Notes: generated from the letters alone by a model not told the origin. DNA of 64,000 bases from Rebecca billardiae RCC1528 (GCA_965240325.2 OZ251251.1:124001-188000), one strand, 5' to 3'; numbered from the stretch's first letter, positions 2-54,591 are shown. Made by a program: numbers and translations.

Positions 2-1375
2 GTGCGGCTGACCGACGTGCCGCCCGAGCTGATCGCGCGCATTCTCGCCCACCTCGATGACGTGCGCGACCTCGCCGCCGCCAACGCCGCCGCGCGCCTC
101 TTCCGCGGCGCGCCGCTCGAGCACGCGCTGCGCGAGCGCGCGCGCGCGCGCGGGCACGAGGCCGCGCTGCCGGCGGCCCTGCCCGCGGGCGTGTCCACGT
201 GGGCGGAGGAGCTCTTCGCGCGTGAGCGCATACTGAAGCTCGCGCACACGCACGCGCACGTCGCGTCCGCCAGCCCACACCCCTTGGAGAGATTGTCTGC
301 CTTTGTCGACGGTGCCGGCGGCGTGCACACATGCGGCGCGCGGCTGGGCCATCCCGAGCTCAGCATGGAGACGTACGTGCGCGTGCCTACGCGCGTGAGC
401 TCGCTGGCGGCGGTGCGCGTGCGAGCAGTGGCTGCCGGCAGCTTCCACCTGCTCGCGCTGAGCGAGGCGGGCGCCGTGTACGCGTGCGGCAGCAACGGCT
501 ACGGCCAGCTGGGCGTGGGCGACAAGGCTGAGCGACGGGCGTTCGTGCAGGTGGCGGCGCTGGGCGCGGCGCTCGTCGTCGGCATAAGCGCTGGCGGTGG
601 CCATAGCCTCGCGCTCTCGGCTGCCGGCGCGGCGTACAGCTGGGGCCGCAACTGCGATGGCCAGCTCGGCCACGGCGACACGGAGCACCGGCTGGAGCCG
701 ACGCGCATCGAGGCGCTGGACGGCGTGCGCGTGGGCGGCGTGGCCACGGGCGGCGACCACACGCTGCTCCTCTCGGCGTGCGGCGCCGTGTACTCGTGCG
801 GGGCTGCCATTGGTGGTCGCCTTGGCCACGGTGACGAGCAGCGGCAGCGCACGCCGACGCGCATCGAGGCGCTCGCGGGCGTGCGCGCCGTGCACGTGAG
901 CGCGGGCTCAGGGCACAGCCTGGTGGTGGACGCGGCGGGCGGCGTGCACTCCTTCGGATACAATTATTGTGGTGCGCTCGGCCACGGTGACGATGTGCAT
1001 GTTGTGGTGCCCACGCGCATCGAGGCACTGGGCGGCATGCGTGTCGTGCGCGCCAGCGCGGGCGTTTGCAACAGCGCGGTGGTGTGCGCGGACGGCAGCG
1101 TGCACGCGTTTGGGAGCAACCACTGTAACCTTCTGGGGCTGGGGGACCGAATGGATCGCGCGCTGCCCGAGCGGGTGGAGGGCCTCGCGCATGCGCGCGT
1201 GGTCGACTGCTCGCTTGGCCACGTGCACACCCTCTACGTCACAGCGGACGGCGGCGTGCACGCGTGCGGCACACGTTCGGCCGCGCTCGGCCTGGGCGTG
1301 GGCGACGATGGCGGAGTGCAGACGACGCTTCAGCGCGTGGTGCAGCTGCCGCCCCTGCGCTGTGGGCTGCGCTGA
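2..1375 (+). CDS. F-box + RCC1-repeat protein, cluster 1 copy 1 (5' end outside window)
   Basis: F-box-like LTDVPPELIARILAHLDDVRDL followed by RCC1 blades (AAGxxHxL...WGxNxxGQLGHGD...PTRIEAL); intronless; TGA at 1373-1375. Confidence 0.9.
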   Translation: MRLTDVPPELIARILAHLDDVRDLAAANAAARLFRGAPLEHALRERARARGHEAALPAALPAGVSTWAEELFARERILKLAHTHAHVASASPHPLERLSAFVDGAGGVHTCGARLGHPELSMETYVRVPTRVSSLAAVRVRAVAAGSFHLLALSEAGAVYACGSNGYGQLGVGDKAERRAFVQVAALGAALVVGISAGGGHSLALSAAGAAYSWGRNCDGQLGHGDTEHRLEPTRIEALDGVRVGGVATGGDHTLLLSACGAVYSCGAAIGGRLGHGDEQRQRTPTRIEALAGVRAVHVSAGSGHSLVVDAAGGVHSFGYNYCGALGHGDDVHVVVPTRIEALGGMRVVRASAGVCNSAVVCADGSVHAFGSNHCNLLGLGDRMDRALPERVEGLAHARVVDCSLGHVHTLYVTADGGVHACGTRSAALGLGVGDDGGVQTTLQRVVQLPPLRCGLR

Positions 1376-1900
1376 GCGGCCGGCTCGTGGTGGGTGCGGT
1401 GCTCATCTGCAGCCTTGTGAGTGCGGCGTGCACACGCGCCGCGCATGCAGCCTCGCGTGCCAGCACTGCGGTGCTGAGCAGCCCGGCGCTCGAGCTCGCG
1501 CTGCGCGTGCGTGGCGTGGTGATGCGCCGGCGATCGAATGGCCCAATCCGAAGGCGCGATGGCATTGTAGGGGGGCGGCACTCATCATCGAGAGTGAGAC
1601 GATTGAGCATCTGAGATCATCTGGATGCATGGATGCGCACAGTGCCATTGAGCAGCAGCTGCTCGCGTGGGTTCCGCGCGCACACCGTGCTGACGCACGA
1701 GCTATCTGTCGTACATTCTGCAAGTACGGCAATACGACTGTACACGTTGTACACTGAGGTCGTTCAGATACTGATGAGTCTGTAAGGCAGTCGTAAGCTA
1801 GTACTGTATGCCGATTGTATGGGGGTAATGTCGTCCTCCCAGTCGCCTGAGTTCGGGCCAACCGTCGTCGTCCAGCGACTCGGCCCGGCGTGGGCAACAG

Positions 1901-3310
1901 ATGGCACCGACGACGCGCTCGCGTACCAAGGCGCGCTCGGCAGCGGCGGCCGTCCGGCTGACCGACGTGCCGCCCGAGCTGATCGCGCGCATCCTCGTCC
2001 ACCTCGATGCCGTGCGCGACCTCGCCGCCGCCAACGCCGCCGCGCGCCTCTTCCGCGGCGCGCCGCTCGAGCACGCGCTGCGCGAGCGCGCGCGCGCGCG
2101 CGGGCACGAGGCCGCGTTGCCGGCAGCCCTGCCCGCGGGCGTGTCCACGTGGGTGGAGGAGCTGTTTGCGCGCGAGCGCGTGTTCGAGCTCGCGCGCGCG
2201 CACACGAACGCCGTCTCTGCCAGCCAATGTTCCGCCTTTGTCACCGCGGACGGTGGCGTGCTCACGTGCGGCGCGCCGCTGGGCCATCCTGAGCTCAGCA
2301 GGGAGGCGCCCGTGCGCGTGCCGACGCGCGTGAGCTCGCTGGGGGCGGTACGCGTGCGCGCCGTGGCAGCCGGTGGTAAGCACCTGCTCGCGCTGAGCGA
2401 GGCGGGCGCCGTGTACGCGTGCGGCAGCAACGACTACGGCCAGCTGGGCGTGGGCGACAAGGCTGAGCGACGGGCGTTCGTGCAGGTGGCGGCGCTGGGC
2501 TCGGAGCTCGTCGTCGGCTTCGCGGCTGGTTGGCACCATAGCCTCGCGCTCACGGCTGCCGACGTGGTGTACAGCTGGGGCGGCAACGGCCACGGCCAGC
2601 TCGGCCATGGTGACACAAAGAAGCGGCTGCAGCCGACGCGCATCGAGGCGCTGGACGGCGTGCGCGTGGGCGGCGTGGCCGCGGGCAGTGGGCACACGCT
2701 GCTGCTTTCGGCGTGCGGCGCCGTGTACTCGTGTGGCGACGGCATGCACGGCCGCCTTGGCCACGACGACTGGCAGGCGCAGCACACGCCACTGCGCATT
2801 GAGGCGCTGGACGGCGTGCGCGCCGTGCACGTGAGCGCGGGCTCAGGGCACAGCCTGGTGGTGGACGCAGCGGGCGGCGTGCACTCCTTTGGGTACGGTC
2901 CTCGTGGCGCGCTCGGCCGCGGTGGCGAGGCGCGTTGTCTGGTGCCCACGCGCATCGAAGCACTGGGTGGCATGCGTGCCGTGCGCGCCAGCGCGAGCTG
3001 TGACAACAGTGCGGTGGTGTGCGCGGACGGCAGCGTGCACACGTTCGGGTTCAACTACTACGGCCAGCTGGGGCTGGGGGACACATTGGATCGCACGCTG
3101 CCCGAGCGGGTGGAGGGCCTCGCGCACGCGCGCGTGCTCGGCTGCTCACTTGGCGGTCGCCACACCCTCTACGTCACAGCGGACGGCGGCGTGCACGCGT
3201 GCGGCGCACATGTGGGCGCGCTCGGCCTGGGCGTGGGCGACGATGGCGGAGAGCAGCCGACGCCGCAGCGCGTGGTGCAGCTGCCGCCCCTGCGCTCTGA
3301 GGCGTGCTGA
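1901..3310 (+). CDS. F-box + RCC1-repeat protein, cluster 1 copy 2
   Basis: 469-aa ORF starting MAPTTR; same architecture as copy 1. Confidence 0.92.
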   Translation: MAPTTRSRTKARSAAAAVRLTDVPPELIARILVHLDAVRDLAAANAAARLFRGAPLEHALRERARARGHEAALPAALPAGVSTWVEELFARERVFELARAHTNAVSASQCSAFVTADGGVLTCGAPLGHPELSREAPVRVPTRVSSLGAVRVRAVAAGGKHLLALSEAGAVYACGSNDYGQLGVGDKAERRAFVQVAALGSELVVGFAAGWHHSLALTAADVVYSWGGNGHGQLGHGDTKKRLQPTRIEALDGVRVGGVAAGSGHTLLLSACGAVYSCGDGMHGRLGHDDWQAQHTPLRIEALDGVRAVHVSAGSGHSLVVDAAGGVHSFGYGPRGALGRGGEARCLVPTRIEALGGMRAVRASASCDNSAVVCADGSVHTFGFNYYGQLGLGDTLDRTLPERVEGLAHARVLGCSLGGRHTLYVTADGGVHACGAHVGALGLGVGDDGGEQPTPQRVVQLPPLRSEAC

Positions 3311-3799
3311 GAGGCGGGCCCCGTGGCAGTTGTGGTGCTCACGCGCAGTGTTGCGAGTGCGGCGTGTACACGGGCCATTGATGCAGCCTCGGGTGGCAGC
3401 ACAGCGCGGTGCTGCTGGAGCAGGAGCAGCCGCTCGCGCTGGCGGCTGCGCGTGGCATGATGCGCCGGCGGATGGCGCGAGGGCATTGTGATTGTGGCAG
3501 GCGGGCACTCGTCATCGAGATTGAGAAGGAGATGATGCGCGCATCGCCATTGAGCATCAGCTGCGCGCGTGGGTTCCGCGCGCACACTGCCGTGCCGCTG
3601 ATGCACTGAATATGCATGCATTCTACTACAATAAGTAGTCAGACACGACTGTACACGTTCGTCAACAGAGTATTGCTGTACGACTGTCGTATGATGACTG
3701 ACTGTACTGTAATGTCCAGCTACTCCTCGCCGAGTTAGAGTGGGCAGTCGGGGAGCAACCGGAAACCTGCTGTCCTCATCGTCGGCGCGGGCCAACAGC

Positions 3800-5230
3800 A
3801 TGGCGCCGACGACACGCGCGCGTACCATGCGCAAGACGCTCTCAGCCGCGGCGGCCGCGCGGCTGACCGACGTGCCGCCCGAGCTGATCGCGCGCATTCT
3901 CGCCCACCTCGATGACGTGCGCGACCTCGTCGCCGCCAACGCCGCCGCTCGCCTCTTCCGCGGCGCGCCGCTCGAGCACGTGCTGCGCGAGCGCACGCGC
4001 GCGCGCGGGCACGAGGCCGCGCTGCCGGCGGCCCTACCCGCGGGCGTGTCCACGTGGGCGGAGGAGCTCTTCGCGCGTGAGCACATACTGGAACTCGCGC
4101 ACGCGCACACGTACGTCGCGTCCGCCAGCCCAACCTTCGGCATGGGCTTCTCCGCCTTTGTTGACGGTGCCGGCGGCGTGCACACGTGCGGCACACCGCT
4201 AGGCCATCCCGAGCTCAGCATGGAGACGGCCGTGCGCGTGCCGACGCGCGTGGGGTCGCTGGAGGCGTTGCGTGTCGCTGCGCTGGCGGCCGGCAGCTTC
4301 CACCTGCTCGCGCTGAGCGAGGCGGGCGCCGTGTACGCGTGCGGCTGCAACGACCGCTGCCAGCTGGGCGTGGGCGACAAGGCTGAGCGACGGGCGTTCG
4401 TGCAGGTGGCGGCGCTGGGCGCGGAGCTCGTCGTCAGCATAAGCGCTGGCGATGGCCACAGCCTCGCGCTCACGGCTGTCGGCGTGGCGTACAGCTGGGG
4501 TTACAACAGCAATGGCCAGCTCGGCCACGGCGACACAAAGCACCGGCTGCAGCCGACGCGCATCGAGGCGCTGGACGGCGTGCGCATCGGTGGCGTAGCC
4601 GCTGGCAGTGGGCATACGCTGCTGCTCTCGGCCCGCGGCGCCGTGTACTCGTGCGGCGACGGCTTGTACGGTCGCCTTGGCCACGGTAACGCGCAGCGGC
4701 AGCGCACGCCGAGGTGCATCGAGGCGCTTGCTGGCGTGCGCGCCGTGCACGTGAGCGCTGGTACGGCGCACAGCCTGGTGGTGGACGCAGCGGGCGGCGT
4801 GCACTCGTTCGGAGACGGCTCTCGTGGTGCGCTCGGCCACAGATACGCGGCGCATCGCTTGGTGCCCACGCGCATCGAGGCACTAGGCGGCACGCGTGCC
4901 GTGCGCGCCAGCGCAGGCGTTTTCAGCAGCGCTGTGGTGTGCGCTGACGGCAGCGTGCACACGTTTGGGTTCAACCGCAGTGGCCAGCTGGGGCTGGGGG
5001 ACACAGTGTATCGCATGCTGCCCGAGCGGGTGGAGGGCCTCGCGCACGCGCGCGTGCTCGGCTGCTCACTTGGCGGTCGTCACACCCTCTACGTCACAGC
5101 GGACGGCGGCGTGCACGCGTGCGGCGCACATGTGGGTGCGCTCGGCCTGGGCGTGGGCATCGATGGCGGAGAGCAGCCGACGCCGCAGCGCGTGGTGCAG
5201 CTGCCGCCCCTGCGCTCTGAGGCGTGCTGA
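3800..5230 (+). CDS. F-box + RCC1-repeat protein, cluster 1 copy 3
   Basis: ATG at 3800 (MAPTTR, homologous to the copy 2 start); 3' end and downstream sequence almost identical to copy 2. Confidence 0.92.
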   Translation: MAPTTRARTMRKTLSAAAAARLTDVPPELIARILAHLDDVRDLVAANAAARLFRGAPLEHVLRERTRARGHEAALPAALPAGVSTWAEELFAREHILELAHAHTYVASASPTFGMGFSAFVDGAGGVHTCGTPLGHPELSMETAVRVPTRVGSLEALRVAALAAGSFHLLALSEAGAVYACGCNDRCQLGVGDKAERRAFVQVAALGAELVVSISAGDGHSLALTAVGVAYSWGYNSNGQLGHGDTKHRLQPTRIEALDGVRIGGVAAGSGHTLLLSARGAVYSCGDGLYGRLGHGNAQRQRTPRCIEALAGVRAVHVSAGTAHSLVVDAAGGVHSFGDGSRGALGHRYAAHRLVPTRIEALGGTRAVRASAGVFSSAVVCADGSVHTFGFNRSGQLGLGDTVYRMLPERVEGLAHARVLGCSLGGRHTLYVTADGGVHACGAHVGALGLGVGIDGGEQPTPQRVVQLPPLRSEAC

Positions 5231-6289
5231 GAGGCGGGCCCCGTGGCAGTTGTGGTGCTCACGCGCAGTCGCGCGAGTGCGGCGTGTACACGGGCCATGG
5301 ATGCAGCCTCGGGTGGCAGCACAGCGCGGTGCTGCTGGAGCCGCAGGAGCAGCCGCTCGCTGCTGGCGGCTGCGCGTGGCATCACGGTGGCATGATGCGC
5401 CGGCGGATGGCGCGAGGGCATTCTTGTAGCAGGGGGGGCACTCGTCATCGATACGTAAGTAGAGTGAGAGAAGGAGATAATGATGCGCGCACGCATTATA
5501 TAATAAGTTGCCGCGCCATTGAGCAGCATCAGCTGCGCGCGGCGTCGGCCCGGGCGGTTCCGCGCGCGCACACGCGGCGCGCGCTGTGCTGTCGCCGACA
5601 ATACTACTGCTGCGCAATATATATACGGCTTATATAATAATATGATACGGATACCGCCAGCACGCGTCGACCATGAGGTGATGAGTCGCATGACGAGACG
5701 ACTGATGAGCGCAGTCATGAGCAGTACCGTAATAATCCGTAGCTAGTATGCGGCGCGCATCATTCACATCAACTCACAGTCACACAGCCACAGGTTTAAG
5801 GTTACTCACACGGTTCACGCCCGTTCGGTCAGCGCGGTGACGCCGAAGTCGGCGCTGGCCAGCACCGTACTGCTCCCGTACTACGTACGACGTTACGGTA
5901 TAGCAGTACTATTATACTCGACTGGACGTCGGAGCATCAGCGGCCCAGCGCGCGGGTGGCGCCACGCCTGCGAACCGCCTGCCGCGCCGGTGGGCACACG
6001 CGTCCAGCGCGCAAGTGCCCGAAGCGACGCCGTGCGTGCAGGCCCCCGTTCCCTCCCTGGCCCTTCACCCGCTCTTCCGCAGCCATCACCTTCGACCGGT
6101 GGTGCGGCGCGCTTGAGTGCACGCGCCGCGCCGACTCGGCGCCGCCGCCCGCGATGCGCGGGGGCCGGTGGCGGCGGCTCTCCGACGGCGCTGCATCCCC
6201 AGAGTCCGGGACATCCCCCGAGTCCAGGGGACGCAGCTGGGTTCTGGGGGCGTGGGGCTCGCGCGCGAGCCCCGCCGCACACCCACCCG

Positions 6290-6352
6290 TGCGTGCTGCG
6301 TGCGTGCGTGCGTGCGTGCGTGCGTGTTTGCTTGCTTGCTTGCTTGCTTGCT
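6290..6352. repeat. (GCGT)n/(GCTT)n compound microsatellite
   Basis: Directly visible, just downstream of the minus-strand phosphorylase gene. Confidence 0.9.
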
Positions 6353-6439
6353 TGGGTCGTCGTCCGGTACCAGTCCGGTGCCACCTTCGCCCGGGGCTCG
6401 GCCGTGCGCTGCGGTGCCCAGCGCCCGCGCCGGCGTCGC

Positions 6440-8129
6440 TCACGCGTGCTGCCCGGGCGGCGGCACGGCGGCGGCGGCGAGCATCTCGGCGATCGACTCG
6501 GGCGTGAGCTTGGCGTACGTCTCCTCCGCGTACGCCGTGAAGATCCCCGCCATCTCGAACCCGCCCAGCCGCTCGCCGTACGTCTTCCACGAGACTTCCG
6601 CCTGCACCTTGGTCCGGGCGAAGAGGAAGCAGAGGCCACTCGGGGAGAAGGCCACGTTGTACGGCGTGTCCGCGGCGTGGCAGCGGGCGATGGCGGCGAG
6701 CAGCGACGCGCGCCCGGCGGCGGAGCGGTACGAGAAGCCCACGTGCGCCGCGGGGTACCCCTTGAGCTGCACCGAGCCGCCCTGCGCGCAGCAGCAGCCG
6801 TGTCGGGCGGGCGGGGCGGGGCGGGGGAGCAGCGGTGAGCGCGGCCGGCCGGGCGGGCGGGCGGGCGCGGGCGGGCGGGCGGCGGTGGCGGCGGTGGCAA
6901 CGCGCGGCGGCGCGGCGCACCTCGAGCGTGTCCGCGTCGACCGGCGCGCCGTCCTCGCCCACCGCCTCGAACCGCTCCAGCGGCAGCGCCTCGTCGGTGA
7001 GGTGGATGTGGAGGTGGTTGATCGAAGCGGCGGCGCCCCACGAGTTGAACGAGGCGGAGAAGCCGTTACGCGCCCCGGACTCGCCGTTACGCCCGGACTC
7101 GGCGGGGCAGCTGGCGAGCAGCTCGGCGAGCGCTTCGAGCGCGGCGGGCGAGAGCCGCTGCGGCGCGAGCTGCGCGGAGACGAGCAGCATGTGCGTGTCC
7201 GCCACCGGGAACTTGTTGGGCAGCACGGAGTAGGGCGCCGCGCCGCAGCAGCAGCCCGCGTCCGCGCCCGCGCCGCCGTCCGCGTTGCCGCCGGCCGGCG
7301 CCGCGCCGCCGCCGCCGAGCTGCACGGTGGCGAGCACCTCGGCGGGGTTGACCTTGGTGAAGTTGAACTTGGCCGGGTCGGGCACGGCGTTCACCTCGAT
7401 CTCGCCGTTCGGGTCCACGCTCGGGTCCGCCGCGAGCGCCGCCGCCTGCGGGTTGGGCTTCTTGTGGCGCCGCGCGTCCAGCCGGACTTTGAACGGTCCG
7501 GCGCGTTTCGTCACGGGGCAGTCCGACGCGTCGTACGCGATGAGCTGGTCGGCGGAGCCGGGCGGCGCGGCGGCGGACGCGTGGAGGCAGCCGGCGAAGA
7601 GCTCGCGCAGCCACGCCGCGCTCGGCTGCGCCGTCGCCTCCTCAGCCGCCGCCGCCGCGGCCGCCTCTGCGCCGCCGGACGCGGAGGACTCGGCCGAGGA
7701 GGAGGAGGAGGAGGGCGCGCGGGAGATGGGCGGCGTGAGGACCTCGGCGACGCTGGGCTCCGTCGGCATCTTGGACGTCTTGGCCGGCGCGTCGAGCGAG
7801 AGCGGCGGCAGCGCCGACTCCGCCGCGCGGCTGAGGAGCACCGGACTTGCCCACGGCAGGACTGGCGACTCCTGCGGCGCGCGGCCGCCGCCGCCGCCGC
7901 CGCCGCGGAGCGCGGGCATGGACCAGCAGGCGGGGATGAGGCCGACGGGCGGCGGCGGCGCGGCGGCGGCGGCGAACGCCGACGCCTGCGCGCGCTCCGC
8001 CCTCGCCGCTGGCGCGAGGCCGAGCGACGACATCGTGAGCGAAGCCTTGATGGGCCGCGGCGGCGGCGGGCCGCGGAGGTGGTTCTTGTCCAGGGCCGGG
8101 GTCATCGCGGGCTGGCTGTAGAGCATCAT
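6440..8129 (-). CDS. GDP-D-glucose phosphorylase 1 / VTC2-family HIT nucleotide-sugar phosphorylase (exons 8129-6921, 6781-6440)
   Basis: Motifs FNFTKV, NKFPVADTHMLLV, SFNSWGAAASINHLHIH (HxHxH as in GDPGP1; plant VTC2 has HxHxQ), PYNV, GGFEMAG. Phase-0 GT-AG intron at 6782-6920 joins two ORFs. Confidence 0.85.
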
Positions 8130-8131
8130 GG

Positions 8132-8388
8132 TTAGCGCCTCTTACCGAGCTTCTTGACGTACCTGCGCGCGGCCGGCACGCGCGGCGCGGGGACGGTCAG
8201 TGCACGCGTGTCGCGCGCGCGCGCGCAGACGCGTAATTGTGCCGCGCGCCGCGCTCGCGCCGCCGCGTGCGCGCGCCGCGGCCGCGGGGCGCGGCGTGGG
8301 CGCGCGCGTGCACGCACCCGGTGAGAAGAGTCGGGTGCTGGTTGAGCCGCGTGGTGCTAGTCTTGTCCGCGAGCGAGCAGGTGGGCAC
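8132..8388 (-). promoter_or_regulatory. Candidate spliced upstream ORF in the leader of the phosphorylase gene
   Basis: GTGCGT donor at 8317 and GCGCAG acceptor at 8163 give (V)PTCSLADKTSTTRLNQHPTLLTG|YVKKLGKRR*. TAA ends 2 nt before the main ATG. No AUG start (GTG at 8388). Confidence 0.45.
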
Positions 8389-9293
8389 GCGCCTGCTTGC
8401 TCACTCTACGCCAGCCGGTGACGACGGGGCCCTGAGAATCCTCTGGACGACGCTGGGCCCTTTGGTGCAGCGACACGCTCCAAAGCCAACGCCCGTGGCT
8501 TTTCAGTTCGCCGACGGGCACACACGTGCACGGCCGCCCGGCGGACGTGCCTCTTCGAGAGGGTAAAACGGAAGGGCGTGGGAATCTTTCACTGTATGAT
8601 TTTGCCTGACGTGGCTCCGACTCAAAGTACTCAACTATCACGGTGTTCGCAGCTTCCTAGAAAGGGCGGGTACGTGCCGTACGTCGGCGACCTATCTCGA
8701 CGCCAATTTTCGAACGGAGCGGTGTGCTGAAGCGGCAGATCACCCAGATGCTGCTATGCATGCAGCGCATCCTCCTAGGCATAAGTGCAAGGCATGTTCC
8801 TTTGGGAACACTGATGATTGACTCTGATTCATCGCATCAATCGCATCTTATGACGTTTTATGGAGGGCGTTCGTTAAATCGTTGATCTCCAGATGATTCG
8901 AGATGATTGTCCGGTTCCCACTTGTCCGGTTCATAGATGCGTTCATCCGGACAGGTGCGCCGGCCGCCTTGCAAACCGTTGGGCCCGCCACGGCGGGCGG
9001 GGGGCGGCGGCGCCACGCCGCCCGGCACGTGCATGCACGGCCCCCGGCGCTTGCCCGCGTTCAGTGACACTGCGGCCCGCCTGCTCACACCCTGCCTGCC
9101 CCGTGACCGTCAGGCCGTGCCCGGCTGACCGGGGTGACGCCTCACGCCACTCGGCCAGCCGCGGCAGATCCGCCGGGCCTGACGAGTGACGGCGCCAGCT
9201 GCCCGCCCAGCGCCTGGTGTCCGGACTCTGGTCGGTCCGGCTGTCGTGTAGCACGCGGCGCGAAGGGCGGCGTGCGGCGGTTGGCGAGGCCGC

Positions 9294-10584
9294 TCACGCC
9301 GCGCCCGGCTTGGGCGGCGTGCCCTCCGCCTCCTTGCCCCCCGTCGCCTCGTCCGCGTCGATCTCGGCCGCAATCTCCTCGTCCGAGGGCAGCGACGAAT
9401 CTTCTCGAAGCTTCGCATCGGCGGCCCTCGCCGCCGCGACGGCGGCGGCCTCCTCCGCCGCGTCGAGCCGCTTGGCCTCGGCGAGCTCGTCCAGCTTGCC
9501 CAGCAGCGCCGTCGACTGCGCGTGCCCGCCCGGGGCCAGCTCGACGACCTGCGCCCACCGCCAAGCGGCGCGCGCGCGCGCGGAGGGTGGTGGCGGGGTG
9601 AGCGGCACGCGCGCGCGCGCACAGCCCACGCCCTACGCATCGCGTGCACGCCCCCGTACGTGCACACCCCTTCGTCCCACGCCCGCTCCGCGCCCGCGCC
9701 ACGCCCGCTCCGCGCCCGTTACACGCCCGTTACACGCCCGTTACACGCCCGTTACACGCCCGTTACACGCCCGTTACACGCACCTGTGCCAGCAGCTCGC
9801 GCGCGTCCTCGTGCATGCCCCACTGCAGCGCGAGCAGCGCGAGATGAAATCTCGCGCGCCAGTGGGTTTCGTCAAGGGCGAGGACGGCCTCGAACTCGTC
9901 GACGGCCTCCTGCTCGCGGTCCGAGCGCTGGTACACCACGCCGCGCAGGAAGTGCGCGTCCGCCGCGCGCGTCGCCGCGTCCTCCGCGCCCGCGGCCGCG
10001 GCCGCGCCGCCGGCCCCCTCCGGGTCAGCATGGCTGCCGGCTGCCCCGTCGCCGTCGCCGTCGGTTTCGTCAAGGACGGCGTCGAGGAGCGGCTCGGCCT
10101 CGAGCACGTCGCCCAGCCGGACGTGCGCGAACGCGAGCACCACCGACAGCCGGCGCACCTCCTCCGCCGCCGCCTGCACCGCCGCATCGCCGCCGCCGCC
10201 GGCGCCGCCGCCGCCCATCAGCAAGGCGCGCGCGTCCGCGAGCGCGCGGCTCAGGTCGAGGCGCGCCTGCTCGAGGTCCTCGCCGCGCTCGAGCGCGCGG
10301 ATCGCGTCCATATCGATTCGCTCGGCCGGCGTGCCGCCCGCGCGCGCGTCGCTCGCGCACGCGCGCGCGCCCTGTCGGCGGCGCGCGCCGCGCGCCGCGC
10401 CGCCCGCCGCCGCGCGCGCAACGATCGGCGGCGGCGCGGCATGCAGCGCGGCGAGCGGGTGCCGGGCGGCGAGGCCCGCGCCGAGGCCGAGGGGCAGGCG
10501 CGACGCCAGCGCGCGGTGGCCGCCTGCCAGCGCCGTCACCTGCAGCACCGCGAGCGACGTCGTCGCGCGCCGCGTCGTCATCAT
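9294..10584 (-). CDS. TPR-repeat protein with possible N-terminal targeting peptide (exons 10584-9784, 9548-9294)
   Basis: TPR-like AHFLRGVVYQ...EAVDEFEAVLALD...ARFHLALL...LLAQ|VVELAPG; phase-0 GT-AG intron at 9549-9783. Confidence 0.8.
9715..9780. repeat. 11-bp minisatellite (CCCGTTACACG)x6 next to the intron donor
   Basis: Six exact units in the TPR-gene intron. Confidence 0.95.
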
Positions 10585-10928
10585 CGCCGCGGCCGGCGCA
10601 GCTGTGGCGCTCTGCCGCGTGGCACTGTGGCAGCCCTCGCGGCCTTGAGCGGCGCCCCTCTGACGAGACAGAAATGATTTCGTCGCGCGATTCGCGCGTG
10701 ACCATTTAATAATGTCGAAACAAATCGCACCGCGATTTTCGGACGCACGATAGATGGTTGCGCGGCCGGACTTTCGAGATATCCGCGAGATATTCGGCCA
10801 GCGGCGGCTGAGCGGCCCGAGCCGGCTCCGGCAGTGCTCCGCCGCACCGACCGGTGAGGCGGCGAGCCAGCGCGCAAAGCCGTCTTTGAAGCCCACATCG
10901 CGCCCCACCCCACCCAGCCACCGCACGG

Positions 10929-12212
10929 ATGACGACGCTCGAGCGCCCCGCCGACAAGTACTCGCCAACCTACTTCCTCGCCTCGCTCGGCACGGGCGGC
11001 ATCGCCGTCACCTTCTTCATGTACCCGCTCTTCTGGGTGCCGCACCCCGGCCGCACCGTGCCGATCTTCGAGGACATCGTCGCGGCGTGGTCGAAGGGCG
11101 ACGCGAGCCTGCAAGCCTCCGTCGTGCTCGCGATGGCGGGCATCCTCACCTTCGCGTTCCTCAACGTGCACTCGCTCGTGTGGAACCTGCGCGCCCACGC
11201 CGCGTTCAAGCAGACGCCCGCGTACGAGCGGCTGCGCCAGTCGCACGCCGAGTCCACGCTGATGGCTCAGCCGCTCGCGCTCGCGATGACGGTCAACGTC
11301 GTGTTCATCGTCGGCCTCGTGTTCGTGCCGCGCCTCTGGACGATCGTCGAGTACCTCTTCCCCGTCGCGATGACCGCCTTCGGCCTCATCACCGCCCAGG
11401 CCTTCCGCCTCCTCGCGCACTTCCTCGGGCGCGTGCTGACGGAGGGCGACCCGGCGCCTCACAACTCGTTCGCGCAGGTCACGCCCGCGTTCGCGATCGC
11501 GATGATCGCCGTGGGCTTCGCCGCGCCGGCGGCGATGAGCTCGAACCCGTCGACCGTCGCCGCCTCGCTCGTCTTCTCCACCACGCTCGGCACCTTCGCC
11601 ATCGTGTACGCCGTGCTCGCGGCAAGCATCGCTCTCTCATCGATGCTCAAGCACGGTACGTCGCAGGAGTCGGCGCCGACGCTCATGATCATCATTCCGA
11701 TCTGCACGGTGCTCGGCATCATGTTCATGCGGCAGGACCACGGCCTCCACGCCGAGTACGACGCGCACGCCAACGCCGGCGAGACCCTCGTCTTCCTCGC
11801 GCGCATGCTCGCCATCCAGCTCGCCTTCTTCTTCGTCGGCGGCGTCGTGCTGCGCTCGCACCGCTACCTGCGCGAGTACGTGCTCGGTCCCAAGGCGTCG
11901 GCGGGCTCGTACGCGCTGGTGTGCCCGTTCGTCGCGCTCTCCGTGATGCTGCACTTCTTCGTGAACAAGGGCCTCGTCGCCGCCGGCGTGTTCGCCAAGT
12001 ACTCCGCCGCGTACTGGGCGATCACCTCGCTGGCACTGCTCTCACAGGCCGTCGCGATCGGCCTGGTGGCGCGGCTGCACGCGCAGCACTTTGTGCGGCG
12101 CACGCCCACGGGCGGCGCCAAGCCCGTGGACCACGCCGCCGAAGTGGCGCCGGCTGGTGGGGCGGAGTCGGTGGACGACGCCCTCGAGCTGGGGCAGGGT
12201 CTGTCTGGATGA
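10929..12212 (+). CDS. Polytopic membrane protein resembling the bacterial TsoY (seleno)protein family
   Basis: 427-aa intronless ORF with many hydrophobic segments. YSPTYFLASLGTGG..FFMY..FWVPHP...PIFED and GSYALVCP match my recollection of TsoY-family proteins; the family name is unverified. Confidence 0.7.
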   Translation: MTTLERPADKYSPTYFLASLGTGGIAVTFFMYPLFWVPHPGRTVPIFEDIVAAWSKGDASLQASVVLAMAGILTFAFLNVHSLVWNLRAHAAFKQTPAYERLRQSHAESTLMAQPLALAMTVNVVFIVGLVFVPRLWTIVEYLFPVAMTAFGLITAQAFRLLAHFLGRVLTEGDPAPHNSFAQVTPAFAIAMIAVGFAAPAAMSSNPSTVAASLVFSTTLGTFAIVYAVLAASIALSSMLKHGTSQESAPTLMIIIPICTVLGIMFMRQDHGLHAEYDAHANAGETLVFLARMLAIQLAFFFVGGVVLRSHRYLREYVLGPKASAGSYALVCPFVALSVMLHFFVNKGLVAAGVFAKYSAAYWAITSLALLSQAVAIGLVARLHAQHFVRRTPTGGAKPVDHAAEVAPAGGAESVDDALELGQGLSG

Positions 12213-12716
12213 GTCGTCGTGCGCCATCGGCCATGATCATCATTACCGCTGTGAGCACTGAGATCCGTCGGATCCGAGCGCCGCGCGTCGCGGGCCGCCC
12301 TGCCGGCACGTCGCCGCGTGTACGACGCTCCATCATGCCGTTCGCACGCACGGCAGGGCGGCATCGCGCTGCTGGCTGCCCTGCCCGCGACTGACTCCCG
12401 GCCCGCCCGGGGATGCCAGTCGCGCCGACGACGCGCGGGACCGCCGGACCGTCGGGCCCGCGCGGGCCGGTACTAGCTCGTCGGTCGTGCCGCGCCGTTA
12501 CTTCCGCGCCGCCCGGGATGCTCGTCGATCGGTCTGGCGACTACGGATGAGTTGCATCATACATCGCGGGCTGCAGAGTGCAGGCGGCTCGTCAGGCTGG
12601 CACCAGTCAGACCTGGCGCCGTCCGCGCTACCTCCGACAGTCACGCGCCCGCTTGGTCATCGCGGTGTCAAGTCCGGCCGCGCATGCAGCACCGGCGGCG
12701 GCGGCTGTGGAGTCAA

Positions 12717-13296
12717 TCAAGCGAACATGTCGAAGCCGCCGGCGTCGCGCGCGGCGGCGGCGGCGGCGAACGCCGCGGCGACGGTCGCGACGGCCGCGGA
12801 CTGGCGCTGCTGCGACGCCGCGTGCTCGAGCGCCGCGCGCGCGAGCACGCGCCGCCCGCGCGCGCGGCTCTGCCACGGAAAGTGCACCACCATGGCAGTT
12901 ACATTATCCTGGGACCCTGCGGCGTACGCGGCACCGGCGATGGCGCGCGCGCCCGCCTCGGCGTCGGGCCAGTGCGCCGCGGCGACGTCGACGACCTGCT
13001 GGTCGCTCAGCACGTCGGTCACGCCGTCGCACACGACCGTGACGAACAGGTCCTCCGGCTGTAACGGTAACGTAACCGTCAGCTCGGGCTGCGCGGAGCA
13101 GATGGCCCGCGGCCGCTTGAGCGCGATGTCGCCGAGGCAGCGCGACATCGCGAGGAACGGGCGCATGCGCCGGACGAACTGGGGGGCGCCGCCCCCGCCG
13201 CCGCCGCCGCCGCTCGCGCCCCCAACGCCCGGCGCACGCACCACACCACCAACCCCACCCGCGACCGCCGCCCCCGCCGCCCCCGCGCCACCGCAC

Positions 13297-13337
<41 letters not shown>

Positions 13338-14499
13338 CATCAGCGGCCCGAGCGGCGTGGTGACGCGCCAAACGCCCTGCAGCTGCACGACCTCGCCGCC
13401 CGACGCGCGCACGCGCGCGCGCTCGTCCGGGCGGTCCGGCTGTGGGCGGGCGGGGCGGGGGGGGCGGGAGGGGTGGTGAGGGCGGGGGCAGCCGGCGCGG
13501 CGCGGGGGCGGCGAGATTGCAATCTCGGCGCGGCGCGGGGGCGGCGAGATTGCAATCTCGGCGCGTCGCGCACCTTGTGGTCGTCCGTGAGCGTGACGCA
13601 CCGCCCCGCGCGGCAGAGCAGCGCGCGGCAGTCGCCCACGTGCGCGATCGCGAGCGCCGTCCGCGCCGCCGCCTCCGTCGCCTCCGCGTCGTCTGAAAAC
13701 TCGGCGGCGACGGCGTCGGCGGCGGCGCACGCGGCGGCGGCGGCAGCGGCGGCGGCGGGTGATGGTGACGATGGCTCGGCGGCGGCGGCGGCGCGCGGCG
13801 GCAGTGGCGGCCACGCCGAGCTGCCCTCTGCCGCCCCGCCGCCGCCCGCCGCGCCGCCGCTCCCCGCCGCGCCCGCCGCGCCGCCGCCGCCACCCGCAGC
13901 GCCCGCCGCCGCCGCCGGCAGCTGACAGATGATTAAGGCAAGCGCGGTGGTGCCGCCGCCGCCGTTGGGCGGCGGCGCGGCGCGGTGCGCGCCGCCGGGC
14001 CCCGCCTGCCACTGCTGCTGCGCCGCCGCGGCGCGCTCGAGGAAGTCCGCGTCCACCTTCGGGAACGCGTACCTCAGCGCGTCCTCAGCGCGTGACACCG
14101 CCGTCGCCAGCGCGGCGGCGGTGGCGGCGGCGGTGGCGGCGGCGGTGGCGGCGGCGGCGGCGCCGCCGCCGGGGGCGTGGGCGTGTGCGCCGCCGGCGGC
14201 GGCGGGCGCGGCGGAGGGCGGCTCCTCGGTGTGCATGCGGCACAGCCCAGCGCACCGCCCGCCCGCCGCCCCGGCGCCACCGCCACCGCCGCCCGGCGCG
14301 GCGGCGGCAGCAGCAGCCGCGCTTGGCGCCGCTGCCGCCGCCTCAGCTGCCTCCGGCGGCGCCGGCCCGGCGCGCGGCGGCGGCGGCGGGGCGCTGACTA
14401 CGCCCGGCGGCGCGCAAGTGGGCACCGGGCTCGGCAGCGGCGAGTCCCACGACGCTCGCGCCCCGGCGGCGGCGGCGGCGGCGGCGTCCGGCGGCGGGC

Positions 14500-14557
<58 letters not shown>

Positions 14558-14906
14558 TGCCGCCGCCGCGGCGTGCGCCTCGGCCGCCTGCGCGTCAAGG
14601 CGCTCCTGCACGCACGCGTGCAGCCGCGCGGCCACGTAGTCCGCGCACGCGGTGCCGCCGTGCCCGTCGTACAGCCCGAAGAACGCCATCTCCGGAGCCG
14701 GCCCGTCCGGACCCGGCCCGTCCGGACTCCGCACGTCCGGACTTTGCGCGGGCCCGGACTGTCCGGGCGGGGCGCCGGACTGCGCGGGCGGCGGCGCTGG
14801 GCTGTGCGCCGGCGGCGGCGGCGGCGGCGGTGGCGTCGTCGTCGTGCCGCCGGGGATGGCGCCGCGCGGCGGGCGCCCCGCGCGGCGCGCCGCCGCCGCC
14901 ACGCCG

Positions 14907-14938
<32 letters not shown>

Positions 14939-15793
14939 CGGCGGCGCGCGGCGCACCGGCGGGCAGCGTAACGGCATCGCCATCGTGTAACGGTCTTCGA
15001 GCGAGGCGCGGCGGCCTTGCCACGACTCGCCGCCGGCGAGCAGGCGCTCGGCGAGCGGCAGCGCGACGTCGGCCGGCGGCGGCGCGCGCGGCGCGGCCCA
15101 CGGCTGCGCCACCGCCGGCCGCGGCGCGGGCTGCGCGCGCGCAGCCGCCGGCCGCCACGCCGCGGCCGCCGGCGGCGGCGGCGACGGCGCCGCCGCGCGC
15201 GCGGCGTGCGGCGGCGCGCCGCCGCCGCCGCCCAGGGCTGGCACGGGCGGCTCGGACGCAAGCACGCCGAGCACGCCGGGCCCCGCCAGCGCCGCCGCCG
15301 GGTACCGGCGCGGCAGCGGCGCCGAGCACGTCGGCGCCACCGGCGCCTGGCGCCGTGGCAGCGGTTGAGTCAGCGGCTGCTGCAGCATCGGCGAGGGTGG
15401 CGCGACGGCCGCGGCGGCGGCGGCCGCGGCGCCGGCGCTGGCGGGCTGCGCGAGCAGCGGCTGGGGCAGGCTCGCGCGACACGCGCCGCCCTCCGCACCG
15501 CCGCCCTCGCCCAGCTCGGCGCGCGCGGCGCGCGGCGGCGGCGGGCGCGCCGCGCCGCCACCGCCGCCGCCGCCGTGTCTAGGCTGCCTGGGCGCAAGGG
15601 CCGGGGAGGCGAAGGCGAAGGCGTGGGCGCCGTTCGGCGGCGGCGGCGGCGCGCGCGCGTCGCGCGGCTCGGCGGCGTGCCGCGCCGCCGCGCCGGGCGC
15701 GGGCACCGCCGCCACGCCCGGACCAGCCGGACCGTCGCTGCCGCTCAGCGTCGGCGGGCGCGCATGCTGCAGTGGCGGCTGCAAGGCTTCGGA

Positions 15794-15826
<33 letters not shown>

Positions 15827-16597
15827 CGCGGCGCCGCCGCCGCCGCCGCCACCGTTGCCGAGCGCGCCGCCGCCGTTGGCGAGGAAGCGTGCGCCGGCGA
15901 GCGCGTGGGGCACGTCGGGCTCGTGCGCCTCGGCGGTGGCATCGCCGTCCCGCCGGGCTCCGCCGCCCACGCCGCCCACGCCGCCGCCGTCGGGTCCGCG
16001 CGTGCGTGCGAGCTTGCGCGCCCGCACCGCCACCGGCGTCGGCGGCTGCGTGCGCGCGGCGGCGGCGGCGGCGGCGGCGGCGGCACCTCGCCTGGCCCAG
16101 GTGGGGCTGGGCCCGAGGGCCTCCTCGCTCTCGTCGTCGTCCGCGTCGTCGTCCCCGTCCTCGCCCGTGTCGTCGCTCGCCGCGCCGCGGGCGCGCGGCG
16201 CGGGCGGCGCATACGCACCACGGCCGTGCGGGCCACAGTGCTCGGCGTCGTCGTCGCGCGTGCGGCGGCGGCCGGCGGCGGGGCGGTAGGTGCCAGCGTA
16301 CGGCTCGGGGCCGCGCTGCCACGCGCCATCGCGCCACGGCCCGCGCGGCACGCGCAGGTGCGCGTCGCGCGCGTCGCGCGTCTCGACGGCCAGCTGGCGG
16401 TCGAGCGCGCGCGCGCCGAGCGCGCCGAGCCCGCCGGCGGCGCGCGGCTCGCGCTCGGCGGAGCGCGAGTGTGTGGGCGAGTGGTCGCGGGAGTGGGGCG
16501 AGTCGCCCGCCGCCGAGCCGCCACGCCGGCCGCCCAGCCGCTCGGCCGCCGCGCGCTCGCGCACCGCGCGCAGCGGGGACGTCTGCCGCCTGCTCAT
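12717..16597 (-). CDS. Protein phosphatase 2C with long low-complexity N-terminus
   Basis: Motifs QGRRASLED, FFGLYDGHGG, GTTA, AHVGDCRA, LTDDHK|PDRPDE, LAMSRCLGD, CDGVTD, GSQDNVT. Intron at 13440-13573; possible in-frame intron at 14780-14956. Confidence 0.88.
13494..13559. repeat. 33-bp tandem duplication containing the palindrome GAGATTGCAATCTC (intronic)
   Basis: Two exact units in the PP2C intron. Confidence 0.9.
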
Positions 16598-16883
16598 CGC
16601 GAGAGCAGCGCGCACTGCGGGCGGCGGCGGCAGGTGGAGTTGCAAGGGACCGCGCGGTTGGTTATTGGTTACTTGGTTACTTGGTTGCACCAGGCGGGTG
16701 AACTACTGAACTATCATACGAACTACTAATTAGCATTAGGTAACTGGTTACCCCGTCGGTTGTGAACTTGCGATGTCTCGGACTTATCACTGAACTGGGC
16801 GAAAACTTTCAAGCATGCGTTGATTGGTTTAACCACGTGGCTCGCGACGATGACGATAGTGCCAGGTGGCGGGGACGCGGTAT

Positions 16884-17070
16884 TCAAATATTTGGTGGTA
16901 GCGGACCGTTTTCTTTTTGATAATCATATCATCCTCTTCATATGGGTTTTCCAAGTGATTATCATGGATGAGCGCTCAATCGAACAATATTGGAAAACCT
17001 CTCGATTCGACGCGATGACCAAGGCCTTTGAGTCCGGTTCGGCCCCTGCCCACGCCTGCACAAGTACTGG
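16884..17070 (+). repeat. 187-bp direct repeat, copy 1
   Basis: Appears identical to 19979-20165; AT-rich relative to its surroundings. Confidence 0.95.
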
Positions 17071-19718: not shown

Positions 19719-19978
19719 GGAGGAGCGGTCGCTGGGGCGAGCGTGTGGGTCGTTGTTCGTTCGCCGTGGTCGTTCAGTGGGTCGCTTTCGCGCCCGCCGG
19801 TCGTCGGTCCGGGCAAGGGCTCGCTCGCGGTCCGTTGTTCCCGAGACACTTGGCCCAACTCGATCGCAAGGGCACATCGCGCGGCGATGGTGCGGAATTT
19901 GTTATTTTATTCGATTTATCGTCTGCAGTCTGCTCGTTTTGGCCCTACTTTCAGAGGAAAAGGGTATTGGACAATTTG

Positions 19979-20165
19979 TCAAATATTTGGTGGTAGCGGA
20001 CCGTTTTCTTTTTGATAATCATATCATCCTCTTCATATGGGTTTTCCAAGTGATTATCATGGATGAGCGCTCAATCGAACAATATTGGAAAACCTCTCGA
20101 TTCGACGCGATGACCAAGGCCTTTGAGTCCGGTTCGGCCCCTGCCCACGCCTGCACAAGTACTGG
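19979..20165 (+). repeat. 187-bp direct repeat, copy 2
   Basis: Appears identical to 16884-17070; embedded in a longer AT-rich tract (~19890-20560). Confidence 0.95.
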
Positions 20166-20799
20166 TTCCTCAGCAGTGGTTATCGGCATCGTGGTTATCG
20201 GCATTATTGTCGGCACGAGATAATCAAGAGCCGGGGTTCAGTGTTTGAACCTCTTGGCTCTTGTACTCACACGCGTCAAACCACCAGGCTTTCTGGATAT
20301 GATCCGGCTTGTGAAACGTTGCAATACCAAGAGTCGAAAGCTCGAAGTTCGTTGATGTGGCTCTCCCGGTTCGCCTCCAATGACGGCGAACACTTCGCGA
20401 ACGGCAATCAACCGCTCGCGTCAATACCAACAAGTACCCCTTACGAGCTCAGAATTGCGTACGGCTCGCTGGGCGCTGGCGACTGTCCATCGGAAGCTTC
20501 GGCTCTGCATGGACCACTGCATCTACCTATGGGGGTAACGGAAGAAAAAAATAACGCGACAAGTTCCAAGTCCGGCACGAGCAGTGGCGCGCGCGCCCAT
20601 CCTTCGTGCGATCGCCCCATAACGGTGCGCCTATCCGGTGCGCCGCCTTCATCGAGCTCACGGCAGCCTGCCGCAGGGTCCGCGCCTCGCCGGAGCCCGC
20701 GAGTTCCGCCAGCCTGCGCCTCCGCCGGGCCGCCACGGGCGCGGCGCGGCGGCGCCGGCTCCGCCGAGCCACCGCGTCCGGCGGCGCCGGTGCGCGCGC

Positions 20800-43987: not shown

Positions 43988-45478
43988 ATGGCCAGCACGG
44001 CACAGGCGCACGCGCGTCGCCTCGCGCTCGACGACCTGCCTCCCGAGGTGCTCAGCCGCATCATCTCGCCCCTTCCGCCGCGCGACCTCGCCAGCCTGAA
44101 CGCCACAGCGCGCCTCTTCCGCGCCGCGCCGCCCGGCGGGTGCTCGGCGGTCGAGCGCGCGCTGCGCGAGCGCGCGCGCGCGCGCGGGCACGAGCGCGCG
44201 CTGCCAGCGTCACTGCCCTCCGGAGTCTACACGTGGACGGAGGAGCTCTTCGTGCGCGAGCGCGTGCTCGCGCTCGCGCGCGCGCACGCATCTCCCGCTG
44301 CGGCCGGCAACGGCTTCAGCGCGTTTGTGGACGCGGAGGGCGGGCTGCACACGTGCGGCGAGGAGGAGGAGTGGGACGAGCGCTGGCGTCCGACAGGTGA
44401 GTACCGGCCGCACGTGGCCATCGGGCACGCGGAATGCCCCGAAGTGCGCGTGCCGACGCGCGTGCCCTCGCTCTCAGCGGTGCGCGTGCGTGCCGTTGCT
44501 GCGGGTGGGCTCCACCTGCTCGCGCTGAGCGAGGCGGGCGCCGTGTACGGCTGCGGCCGCAACGGATACGGCCAGCTGGGGCTCGGGGACACGGAGGAGC
44601 GGCGTTCGTTTGCTCCCGTCATGGCTCTGCACGATGCAGTCGTCGTGGGCGTCATGGCCGGTGGGCACCACAGTCTCGCGCTCACAGCCGCTGGGTGCGC
44701 GTACAGCTGGGGCGACAACGAGTGGGGCCAGCTCGGCCACGGCGACACGGAGGACCTGCTGGAGCCGACACGCATCGAGGCACTTGACGGCGTGCGTATC
44801 GGTGGCGTAGCCGCCGGGGCTTTGCACTCGCTGTTTGTATCTGCTGGCGGCACCGTCTACTCATGCGGCTATGGCTCCGAAGGCCGGCTCGGCCACGGTG
44901 ACGAGCAGCATCAGCACACGCCGAGGCGCACCGAGGCGCTCGCTGGCGTGCGCGCCGTGCACGTGAGCGCGGGCTTCACGCACAGCCTGGTGGTGGACGC
45001 AGCGGGTAGCGTGCACTCCTTCGGAGAAGGGTCTTTTGGCTGTCTTGGGCACGGCGATTGCGCTCGATGGTTCGCGCCGGCGCGCATTGAGGCCCTGGTT
45101 GGCGTCACGGCCGTGCGTGCGTGCGCTGGTGATTGCGGCAGCGCTGTGCTGGGTGCGGACGGCAGCGTGCACACGTTCGGGGACAACAGCAACAGTCAGC
45201 TGGGGCACGAGGGTGCGGACACCTTTGTTGAGCCGCCCGAGCGTGTGCACGCGCTTGCGCACGCGCATGTCACTCGCTGTTCGCTCACCAGTGACCACGC
45301 GCTGTACGTCACTGCGGACGGCAGCGTGCTCTCGTGCGGCCGGCGGTCGGCCGCGCTCGGCCACGGTGTGAGGCTGAGCGAGGCAGACTACGCGTTTGCG
45401 GAGGTGAACGAGGGATGGTGGGCGCCCACGCGCATCAAGCGGCTGCCGCGTTTGCACGGGGCGGCCGGCTTGGCGTGA
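43988..45478 (+). CDS. F-box + RCC1-repeat protein, cluster 2 copy B
   Basis: F-box-like LDDLPPEVLSRIISPLPPRDLASL followed by RCC1 blades. Confidence 0.9.
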   Translation: MASTAQAHARRLALDDLPPEVLSRIISPLPPRDLASLNATARLFRAAPPGGCSAVERALRERARARGHERALPASLPSGVYTWTEELFVRERVLALARAHASPAAAGNGFSAFVDAEGGLHTCGEEEEWDERWRPTGEYRPHVAIGHAECPEVRVPTRVPSLSAVRVRAVAAGGLHLLALSEAGAVYGCGRNGYGQLGLGDTEERRSFAPVMALHDAVVVGVMAGGHHSLALTAAGCAYSWGDNEWGQLGHGDTEDLLEPTRIEALDGVRIGGVAAGALHSLFVSAGGTVYSCGYGSEGRLGHGDEQHQHTPRRTEALAGVRAVHVSAGFTHSLVVDAAGSVHSFGEGSFGCLGHGDCARWFAPARIEALVGVTAVRACAGDCGSAVLGADGSVHTFGDNSNSQLGHEGADTFVEPPERVHALAHAHVTRCSLTSDHALYVTADGSVLSCGRRSAALGHGVRLSEADYAFAEVNEGWWAPTRIKRLPRLHGAAGLA

Positions 45479-54286: not shown

Positions 54287-54591
54287 TAACGTGCACACTT
54301 GGTTAAGGCGTAGTGATTGACGCCATCCAACACGTACTGCACAAAGACACCAGGTTAAAATTCCCCTTTATAACTGGCTCCGGGTGACACGACAGACCGG
54401 GTGATCAGGCTGGCGGCCGAAGCCTCCAGCCCTACCCTGGCCAGCCCCCAACCAACCACCACCCTCACCCAACCTCAAACCACTGACCGAGACACCCGTA
54501 GTGTCTTGACACCACTCCACTATGGACAGCCCGCCCGCCACAAAACAGACCGGCGCAACAGTACTGGCCAGTCAATACGGTTTGGCGCTTT

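Follow-up and report, generated by a model that had tools for sequence, protein, structure and literature searches.

An expanded family of F-box-like/RCC1-propeller proteins with periodic hypervariable loops in Rebecca billardiae RCC1528

The stretch of DNA described here (the window; 64,000 nucleotides of Rebecca billardiae RCC1528, G000:C35:124001-188000, from a genome of 72 Mb in 41 contigs with a G+C content of ∼70%) carries members of a large gene family in which an F-box-like N-terminal region precedes a seven-bladed RCC1-like propeller. Variation among the copies is concentrated at the same few positions of each 52-residue blade, on what is predicted to be a single face of the propeller, and at these positions replacement changes outpace silent ones. 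The best reading, and probably the correct one, is a diversifying repertoire of F-box-type receptors.

Three tandem head-to-tail open reading frames (ORFs), all intact and intronless, were found on the + strand at 2-5230 of the window, with 79-81% protein identity among them. A further three copies at 43988-49143 are ∼60% identical to these. An earlier note made from the DNA alone (the sequence-only reading) had counted six near-complete copies at 2-5230; three are there, the other three belong to the second location and the sixth is frameshifted. Copy 2 was used as the reference for residue numbering. The copies are:

2..1375, + strand, F-box-like/RCC1 copy 1, from ORF and translation, 5' end cut at the window start
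1901..3310, + strand, F-box-like/RCC1 copy 2, 469 amino acids, intact, no intron needed
3800..5230, + strand, F-box-like/RCC1 copy 3, 476 amino acids counted from the conserved MAPTTR start
43988..45478, + strand, copy 4, divergent subfamily, 58% identical to copy 2, PF12937 30.1 bits
45770..47281, + strand, copy 5, divergent subfamily, PF12937 28.3 bits
47643..49143, + strand, copy 6, frameshifted, 7-bp tandem duplication TCCTTCG x2 at 48672-48685

The domains of copy 2 were assigned as follows:

1955..2098, + strand, F-box-like region, residues 19-66, PF12937 below cut-off, helices 25-32, 38-51 and 56-66 predicted
2099..2212, + strand, conserved linker, residues 67-104, R-G-H-E-x-A-L-P ... 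G-x-x-T-W-x-E-E-L, helix 84-100
2213..3271, + strand, seven-bladed RCC1-like propeller, residues 105-457, from Pfam, AlphaFold2 (AF2) strands and Foldseek
2375..3208, + strand, span of 28 hypervariable codons, from entropy, periodicity and the ratio of replacement to silent divergence (dN/dS)

Variability was measured in an alignment of 29 intact core-clade paralogs from the genome together with two divergent copies from the window, a set that is part of the full family. Among the 29 paralogs mean entropy was 2.55 bits at 30 motif positions and 0.44 bits in the remaining propeller, and 25 of the 30 motif positions were among the 30 most variable sites. The variable positions number five per 52-residue blade and fall in two motifs, G-xx-H and G-x-N-xx-G. 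When the six full repeats were stacked, blade positions 8, 9, 25, 27 and 28 gave 2.6, 2.9, 2.6, 2.5 and 2.2 bits; a weaker variable cluster was seen at positions 36-40 (1.0-1.7 bits), after each G-x-L-G-x-G-D, and nearly all remaining blade positions were below 0.7 bits. The last blade is variable at just one of three G-x-x-xx-G positions. Entropy along the protein was autocorrelated with r = 0.74 at a lag of 52 residues and 0.68 at 104, values reached by 0 of 10,000 permutations. Variation at the same sites of each blade on a constant scaffold, as the sequence-only reading had described it, is thus borne out. The variable loops contain no insertions or deletions, so that the alignment there is unambiguous.

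The strings quoted in that reading were present in the six window copies: AAG[SF/GK/SF/GL/YV], WG[R/G/Y/D/P/R]N[CD/GH/SN/EW/GY/WS]GQLG, SAG[SG/SG/TA/FT/DA/YH]HS, CG[AAIG/DGMH/DGLY/YGSE/RGSE/WGSS]G and FG[YNYC/YGPR/DGSR/EGSF/DGSF]G. Two further entries, both of the sixth copy, were recognised by reading the translations: AAG-WA, where R stands in place of H, and FG-EGHS, which lies in reading frame two. A majority consensus settled no residue at AAG-xx-H, CG-x-N-xx-GQLG and the like; unsettled positions were also scattered over the N-terminal tail, ahead of the first strand and after each G-x-L-G-x-G-D. Each copy has its own combination of residues at the variable sites, and copies 4 and 5 share 11 of 30 variable residues as against 275 of 318 in the propeller scaffold. 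Residues ∼107-118 of copy 2 (e.g. window 2219-2254), just before the first propeller strand, form an indel-rich variable stretch.

The hypervariable residues of copy 2 are 159, 160, 176, 178 and 179, then +52 per blade up to 419, 420 and 436, and their codons (+ strand) start at:

2375, 2378, 2426, 2432, 2435, 2531, 2534, 2582, 2588, 2591
2687, 2690, 2738, 2744, 2747, 2843, 2846, 2894, 2900, 2903
2999, 3002, 3050, 3056, 3059, 3155, 3158, 3206

Residue usage at these sites is strongly skewed. At the 28 variable sites Tyr has a share of 13% (12% over the 30 motif positions), 9x its scaffold frequency and 7x the expectation from spacer base composition. Relative to scaffold and to the neutral spacer expectation, Phe is raised 3-4x and Asp 2-3x, and Pro falls to 0.1-0.2x and Val to 0.2-0.4x; enrichment extends to His, Asn and Ser, and depletion to Leu and Ala. 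T-ending codons are commoner among the variable codons than in the scaffold.

The propeller is a bona fide RCC1-like domain. PF00415 (RCC1) matched copies 1-3 in 5-6 stretches with E between 3e-62 and 2e-68, and PF25390 (RLD) gave 231-243 bits against a cut-off of 150. An AF2 model of copy 2, built from an alignment of 39 relatives, had a mean predicted local distance difference test score (pLDDT) of 89.7 and a predicted template modelling score (pTM) of 0.87, with at least 28 strands in four-stranded blades following four N-terminal helices (25-32, 38-51, 56-66 and 84-100). Foldseek aligned this model with UVR8 (template modelling score normalised to target 0.89-0.93), the RLDs of HERC2 and HERC1, RPGR and RCC1, at a probability of 1.00 for UVR8, HERC2 and RCC1 and with E of 1e-33 to 1e-39 for UVR8 and the HERC2 RLDs. 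UVR8 was also the closest solved protein by sequence (E 6e-70). A UVR8-type UV-B photoreceptor was rejected, the GWRHT tryptophan triad (W233, W285 and W337 with the adjacent arginines) not being conserved: the family varies most at the two residues flanked by G and H[ST] (mean 2.6-2.9 bits), which in copy 2 read, for example, GK, WH, SG, SG and GR. A Ran guanine nucleotide exchange factor was likewise set aside: UVR8 and HERC2 both match better than RCC1 itself (E 9e-31), and a face that changes from copy to copy argues against a single conserved partner such as Ran.

All variable loops are predicted to lie on one face of the propeller, a placement based on strand topology and alignment to UVR8 rather than on measured distances. 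Each G-xx-H pair occupies the turn between strands two and three of its repeat (e.g. 159-160, between strands 152-157 and 161-166), and the G-x-N-xx-G residues begin the loop past the fourth strand (e.g. 176-179, after strand 171-175), a long loop that also holds the weaker G-D-xxx cluster. Since two antiparallel strands separate the two loop types, both should open on the same side of the disc. Equivalences to UVR8 were taken from a phmmer alignment to chain 6xzm_A, the D96N D107N W285A mutant:

copy-2 D280, M282 and H283: UVR8 W94, D96 (N in 6xzm) and F97
copy-2 A293, in the weaker cluster: UVR8 D107 (N in 6xzm)
copy-2 S263 and G264: UVR8 W285 (A in 6xzm) and R286
copy-2 G419 and R420: W and R of a UVR8 GWRHT motif

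UVR8 W233 is also among the positions aligned with variable sites. In UVR8, R286 adjoins the chromophore W285 and forms cross-dimer salt bridges with D96 and D107 (PMC5091643). The variable sites therefore align with residues that a related propeller uses as a protein-protein interface, and the single face expected by the sequence-only reading agrees with both lines of evidence.

Selection was assessed on pooled site classes. A maximum-likelihood tree, star-like with weak internal support, supplied 14 phylogenetically independent pairs for this. By the Nei-Gojobori method (NG86) the proportion of replacement differences (pN) was 0.40 at the 30 motif sites; in the scaffold pN was 0.064 and the proportion of silent differences (pS) 0.126. 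The pS inside variable codons was not used as a denominator because it is inflated by multi-hit path averaging. The ratio of dN at hypervariable (HV) sites to scaffold dS was 4.2 and exceeded 1 in 14/14 pairs (range 1.55-8.7), with a scaffold dN/dS (omega) of 0.49. To avoid circularity a second set of sites was picked from window copies alone, as the 37 columns with at least four different residues among the five alignable window copies, and measured in 11 pairs without any window copy. Here dN was 3.0x the dS of the remaining sites (bootstrap 2.2-4.1), with 11/11 pairs above 2.

In a codon model (GY94+F3X4, fixed topology) the 28 variable codons gave omega = 1.75 with a transition/transversion ratio (kappa) of 1.14, and the rest omega = 0.29 with kappa = 3.8. 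Fixing omega at 1 in the HV codons, with kappa on a grid, changed the log likelihood (lnL) by -7.5 (2ΔlnL = 15, 1 degree of freedom) and was rejected, and with it relaxed constraint alone. Loop residues thus change faster than silent sites, and the scaffold is under purifying selection; dN/dS at the variable sites, which the sequence-only reading had proposed as a check, lies above 1 in each of these estimates. Per-site binomial tests over the 14 pairs were under-powered, the lowest uncorrected p values being 0.027 and 0.039, neither of which would survive correction.

By homology the N-terminal region is F-box-like. Its sequence reads L-T-D-V-P-P-E-L-I-A-R-I-L-x-H-L-D-D-V-R-D-L-A-A-A-N-A-A-A-R-L-F-R, and in copy 2 PF12937 aligned over profile positions 2-32 of 47 with E 0.018-0.034. 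Copies 4 and 5, with N-termini 67-68% identical to that of copy 2, passed the cut-off of 24.3 bits (30.1 and 28.3), and all 16 aligned N-termini matched PF12937 at E<=1, the best at 4e-07. The F-box-like helices had pLDDT 67-79 in the full-length AF2 model of copy 2. The linker that joins this region to the propeller has many columns invariant even across both subfamilies, and across subfamilies no part of the protein is better conserved than the N-terminal 85 residues. A docking partner common to all copies, such as Skp1, would predict conservation of this kind beside a hypervariable domain.

The same layout was found outside this genome. Homologs from metagenomes and Logan assemblies were 37-49% identical with the same domain layout, the best (49%) coming from Logan run ERR14847148, and P0001, P0003, P0004, P0007 and P0018 have the F-box-like N-terminus followed by the propeller. 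In a protein atlas the nearest neighbours of the N-terminal part were F-box clusters (scores 0.75-0.80), two of them haptophyte F-box + RCC1 clusters and another FBXO24 (0.75); these are leads only. The genome encodes a single Skp1 gene (PF01466, 101 bits, G000:C5:834227-834370) and at least three cullin loci (PF00888), with 685 and 506 bits on C29 and C15 and a weaker match on C5. Docking of family members on this Skp1, and ubiquitylation through it, would be consistent with these data.

A whole-protein search of the genome, in which 91 of 730 first-look candidates were scored, returned 92 matching places, three with one internal stop each. With the N-terminal 85 residues as query there were 542 first-look candidates, of which 150 were scored; every one of these matched at E<1e-24, and a stop was present in one. 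The family accordingly has at least 150 members and perhaps about 500. Copies lie on more than 25 contigs, in arrays with ∼1.9-kb spacing on C35, C20, C33, C31 and others. Only ∼1-3% of scored copies are visibly broken. The birth-and-death turnover proposed by the sequence-only reading is thus upheld in part: birth and retention are plentiful, as recent duplicates show, and decay is slight. One of the three whole-protein matches with a stop, L022 (G000:C16:632292-633713), has one TAG in frame.

The diversity stems from block duplication and segment exchange together with fast change in the loops. Even among very young pairs, with a scaffold pS of 0.02-0.03, 7-8 of the 30 variable sites are different. 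Two copies with ∼2% silent divergence, L004 (G000:C35:67333-67392) and L014 (G000:C35:56254-56313), differ in one loop by seven nucleotides in the four codons 384-387 (FNYK vs DNEW), with no further change between codons 342 and 396. No donor for the derived loop was found, no other copy being more than 93% identical to the 60-mer among the 40 best of 177 candidates in the genome; the other version of the loop has near-matches at 95-96%. A second pair of paralogs 20 kb apart, L018 (G000:C35:72712-74121) and L011 (G000:C35:94378-95787), shows 0 differences over codons 128-307 and 50 differing codons, silent and replacement, over codons 342-459. This mosaic is a sharp recombination or gene-conversion breakpoint.

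These results can be assembled into a proposed mechanism. In a large, recently expanded, tandemly arrayed and intronless family, the N-terminal three-helix region would dock on Skp1 of an SCF (Skp1-cullin-F-box) ubiquitin ligase, and a rigid, highly conserved helical linker would hold the seven-bladed RCC1-like propeller. The G-xx-H turns and G-x-N-xx-G loops, with the weaker G-D-xxx clusters, would form one face of ∼30-50 residues under diversifying selection, resembling a protein-binding paratope in its wealth of Tyr, Phe, Asp and Ser. As the face differs in each copy, each would present its own binding surface and might hand a different target to the ubiquitin system. New specificities would arise by block duplication within arrays, fast loop change and segment exchange among paralogs. 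A stronger form of this proposal, a germline-encoded antibody-like repertoire of several hundred SCF receptors providing degradation-based immunity against giant viruses or mobile elements, perhaps fed by loop-focused diversification, is tentative and on present evidence doubtful. Loop-focused diversification is hinted at by the seven changes in four codons without a donor and by raised silent change beside the loops.

Several results weigh against the receptor reading, and three other explanations were considered. The proteins may be diversified binders that do not act through SCF, their F-box-like helices degenerate or re-used, and serve as stoichiometric binders, inhibitors, adaptors or self/non-self determinants (mating, allorecognition); a diversifying face fits any of these roles equally well. 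The F-box identity given by the sequence-only reading stands above threshold in copies 4 and 5, and copies 1-3 scored 14.3-18 bits on PF12937, below its cut-off, as does the core clade. The PF12937 alignment covers profile positions 1-33 of 47 and leaves the third F-box helix unmatched. A search of the PDB with the N-terminal profile returned no significant F-box protein (FBXO31, E = 1.5), and a model of the N-terminus by itself was poor (pLDDT 58.5) and had no Foldseek match. A role outside SCF is nevertheless rather unlikely. The N-terminal 85 residues are better conserved across subfamilies than any other part, as a shared docking partner predicts; in addition two paralogs pass the Pfam cut-off, and Skp1 and cullins are encoded in the genome.

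The loops might also be unconstrained or locally hypermutable and the scaffold kept alike by gene conversion, the contrast between them then being a by-product of concerted evolution without selection for diversity. In the 14 pairs pS was moderately raised within two codons of variable sites (0.187 vs 0.119, p = 8.5e-6), and the HV partition gave a tree 11x the length of the scaffold tree; micro-conversion, older coalescence or saturation may therefore account for part of the signal. The star-like trees and at least one mosaic pair (L018/L011) weaken any estimate on a fixed tree, and the low kappa of the HV codons and the donorless L004/L014 loop also fit this explanation. Under it, however, omega within the HV codons should not have reached 1.75 with omega = 1 rejected, HV dN should not be 3-4x scaffold dS in every independent pair, and residue usage should lie closer to the neutral expectation than Tyr at 7x and Pro at 0.1x; a scaffold omega of 0.29-0.49 is that of ordinary purifying selection rather than mere homogenisation. 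An origin of the pattern without selection is accordingly improbable. A selfish or mobile-element-associated family, whether spread by transposons, derived from giant viruses or akin to the F-box genes of Caenorhabditis toxin-antidote or hybrid-incompatibility systems, is more improbable still. Dispersal over more than 25 contigs, the intronless state of every copy and a giant-virus RCC1 cluster among the atlas neighbours (score 0.77, a lead only) would suit it; the regular ∼1.9-kb head-to-tail spacing and diverged spacers point instead to unequal crossing-over, base composition matches the host genome, and neither transposase nor terminal repeats were seen in the units of 2-5230.

Expanded, positively selected families of F-box substrate receptors are said to have been described by Thomas in 2006. 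The expanded F-box families of nematodes and plants are the closest known systems to the present one. Like it, they comprise hundreds of clustered lineage-specific paralogs in which a conserved F-box is joined to a fast-evolving target-binding domain, and recognition of foreign or changing proteins has been proposed for them; expansion and positive selection are documented in, for example, C. elegans (PMC8120010). The target-binding domain there is FBA, FTH, Kelch or LRR, whereas here it is an RCC1 propeller with variability confined to about five fixed positions per blade at an exact 52-residue period, in a GC-rich alga-like protist. The combination of F-box and RCC1 repeats is already known from animal FBXO24, where the likeness is one of architecture only: FBXO24 is single-copy and conserved in chordates, without a repertoire or hypervariable loops. 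UVR8, closest by sequence and fold, has interaction-face residues that coincide with the variable positions, but lacks an F-box, is single-copy and carries the GWRHT tryptophans that the window family has not kept. In the RLDs of HERC2 and HERC1 the propeller binds peptides or substrates as part of an E3 ubiquitin ligase (title of PDB entry 7q41), although these are HECT rather than SCF ligases, conserved single genes and without hypervariability.

A constant repeat scaffold with hypervariable exposed sites at the same place in each repeat, rich in Tyr and Asp, is also known from the variable lymphocyte receptors (VLRs) of lampreys and the leucine-rich repeats (LRRs) of plant nucleotide-binding (NLR) receptors. 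Those are solenoids and their output is signalling, whereas here the fold is a propeller and the presumed output degradation; evidence of somatic assembly was not seen here. In the literature searched no description of a hypervariable F-box-like RCC1 family was found, 'RCC1' in algal and virus papers referring to Roscoff Culture Collection strain numbers and not to the domain. What is new is a hypervariable scaffold made from an RCC1 propeller, variable sites of strict periodicity, and a family this large in a protist.

The chief candidates for ubiquitin-based innate recognition in nematodes and plants are F-box families that have expanded and evolve fast, and the binding sites of these are poorly defined. 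In the present family the variable positions are few, strictly periodic and placed on one face of a well-predicted propeller, so that the 'paratope' could be read straight from sequence. Should Skp1 docking hold true, a marine-alga-like protist would possess in this family a large repertoire for recognition and degradation; how such organisms defend themselves against giant viruses is an open question. Engineered binders or degraders might also be built on the scaffold.

The remaining features of the array are its spacers, which at 1376-1900, 3311-3799 and 5231-5760 have 62% G+C as against ∼71% in the genes:

1376..1900, + strand, spacer between copies 1 and 2, 62% GC

Identity among the spacers is 64-77%, below that of the coding scaffold, and good alignment is limited to the first ∼230 nt past each stop codon, which may be a shared 3' untranslated region. 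The whole gene of copy 1 occupies G000:C35:123951-125375 including the stop codon, with its start 50 nt upstream of the window, and was recovered in full as L020:1501-2922 (474 amino acids); it matched Pfam RCC1 at 3e-62 and RLD at 2.9e-68 and was 79% identical to copy 2 by tblastn. The ORF of copy 3 opens at GTG 3740 in the ORF listing. The parts of copy 6 on either side of its frameshift at 48672-48685 are otherwise intact; the break is either an assembly error or makes the copy a very recent pseudogene.

Elsewhere in the window, nine long ORFs at 5937-24212 and 53058-60719 had no Pfam match at E<=1e-4, and many of these may be spurious open frames of GC-rich DNA. An intronless gene for a glycerate/2-hydroxyacid dehydrogenase (PF02826, PF00389) lies at 41999-43108 on the + strand. 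Its sole identical match was a 334-amino-acid Logan assembly protein (P0121), and the next matches, from a mixture of algae and bacteria, were 50-63% identical.

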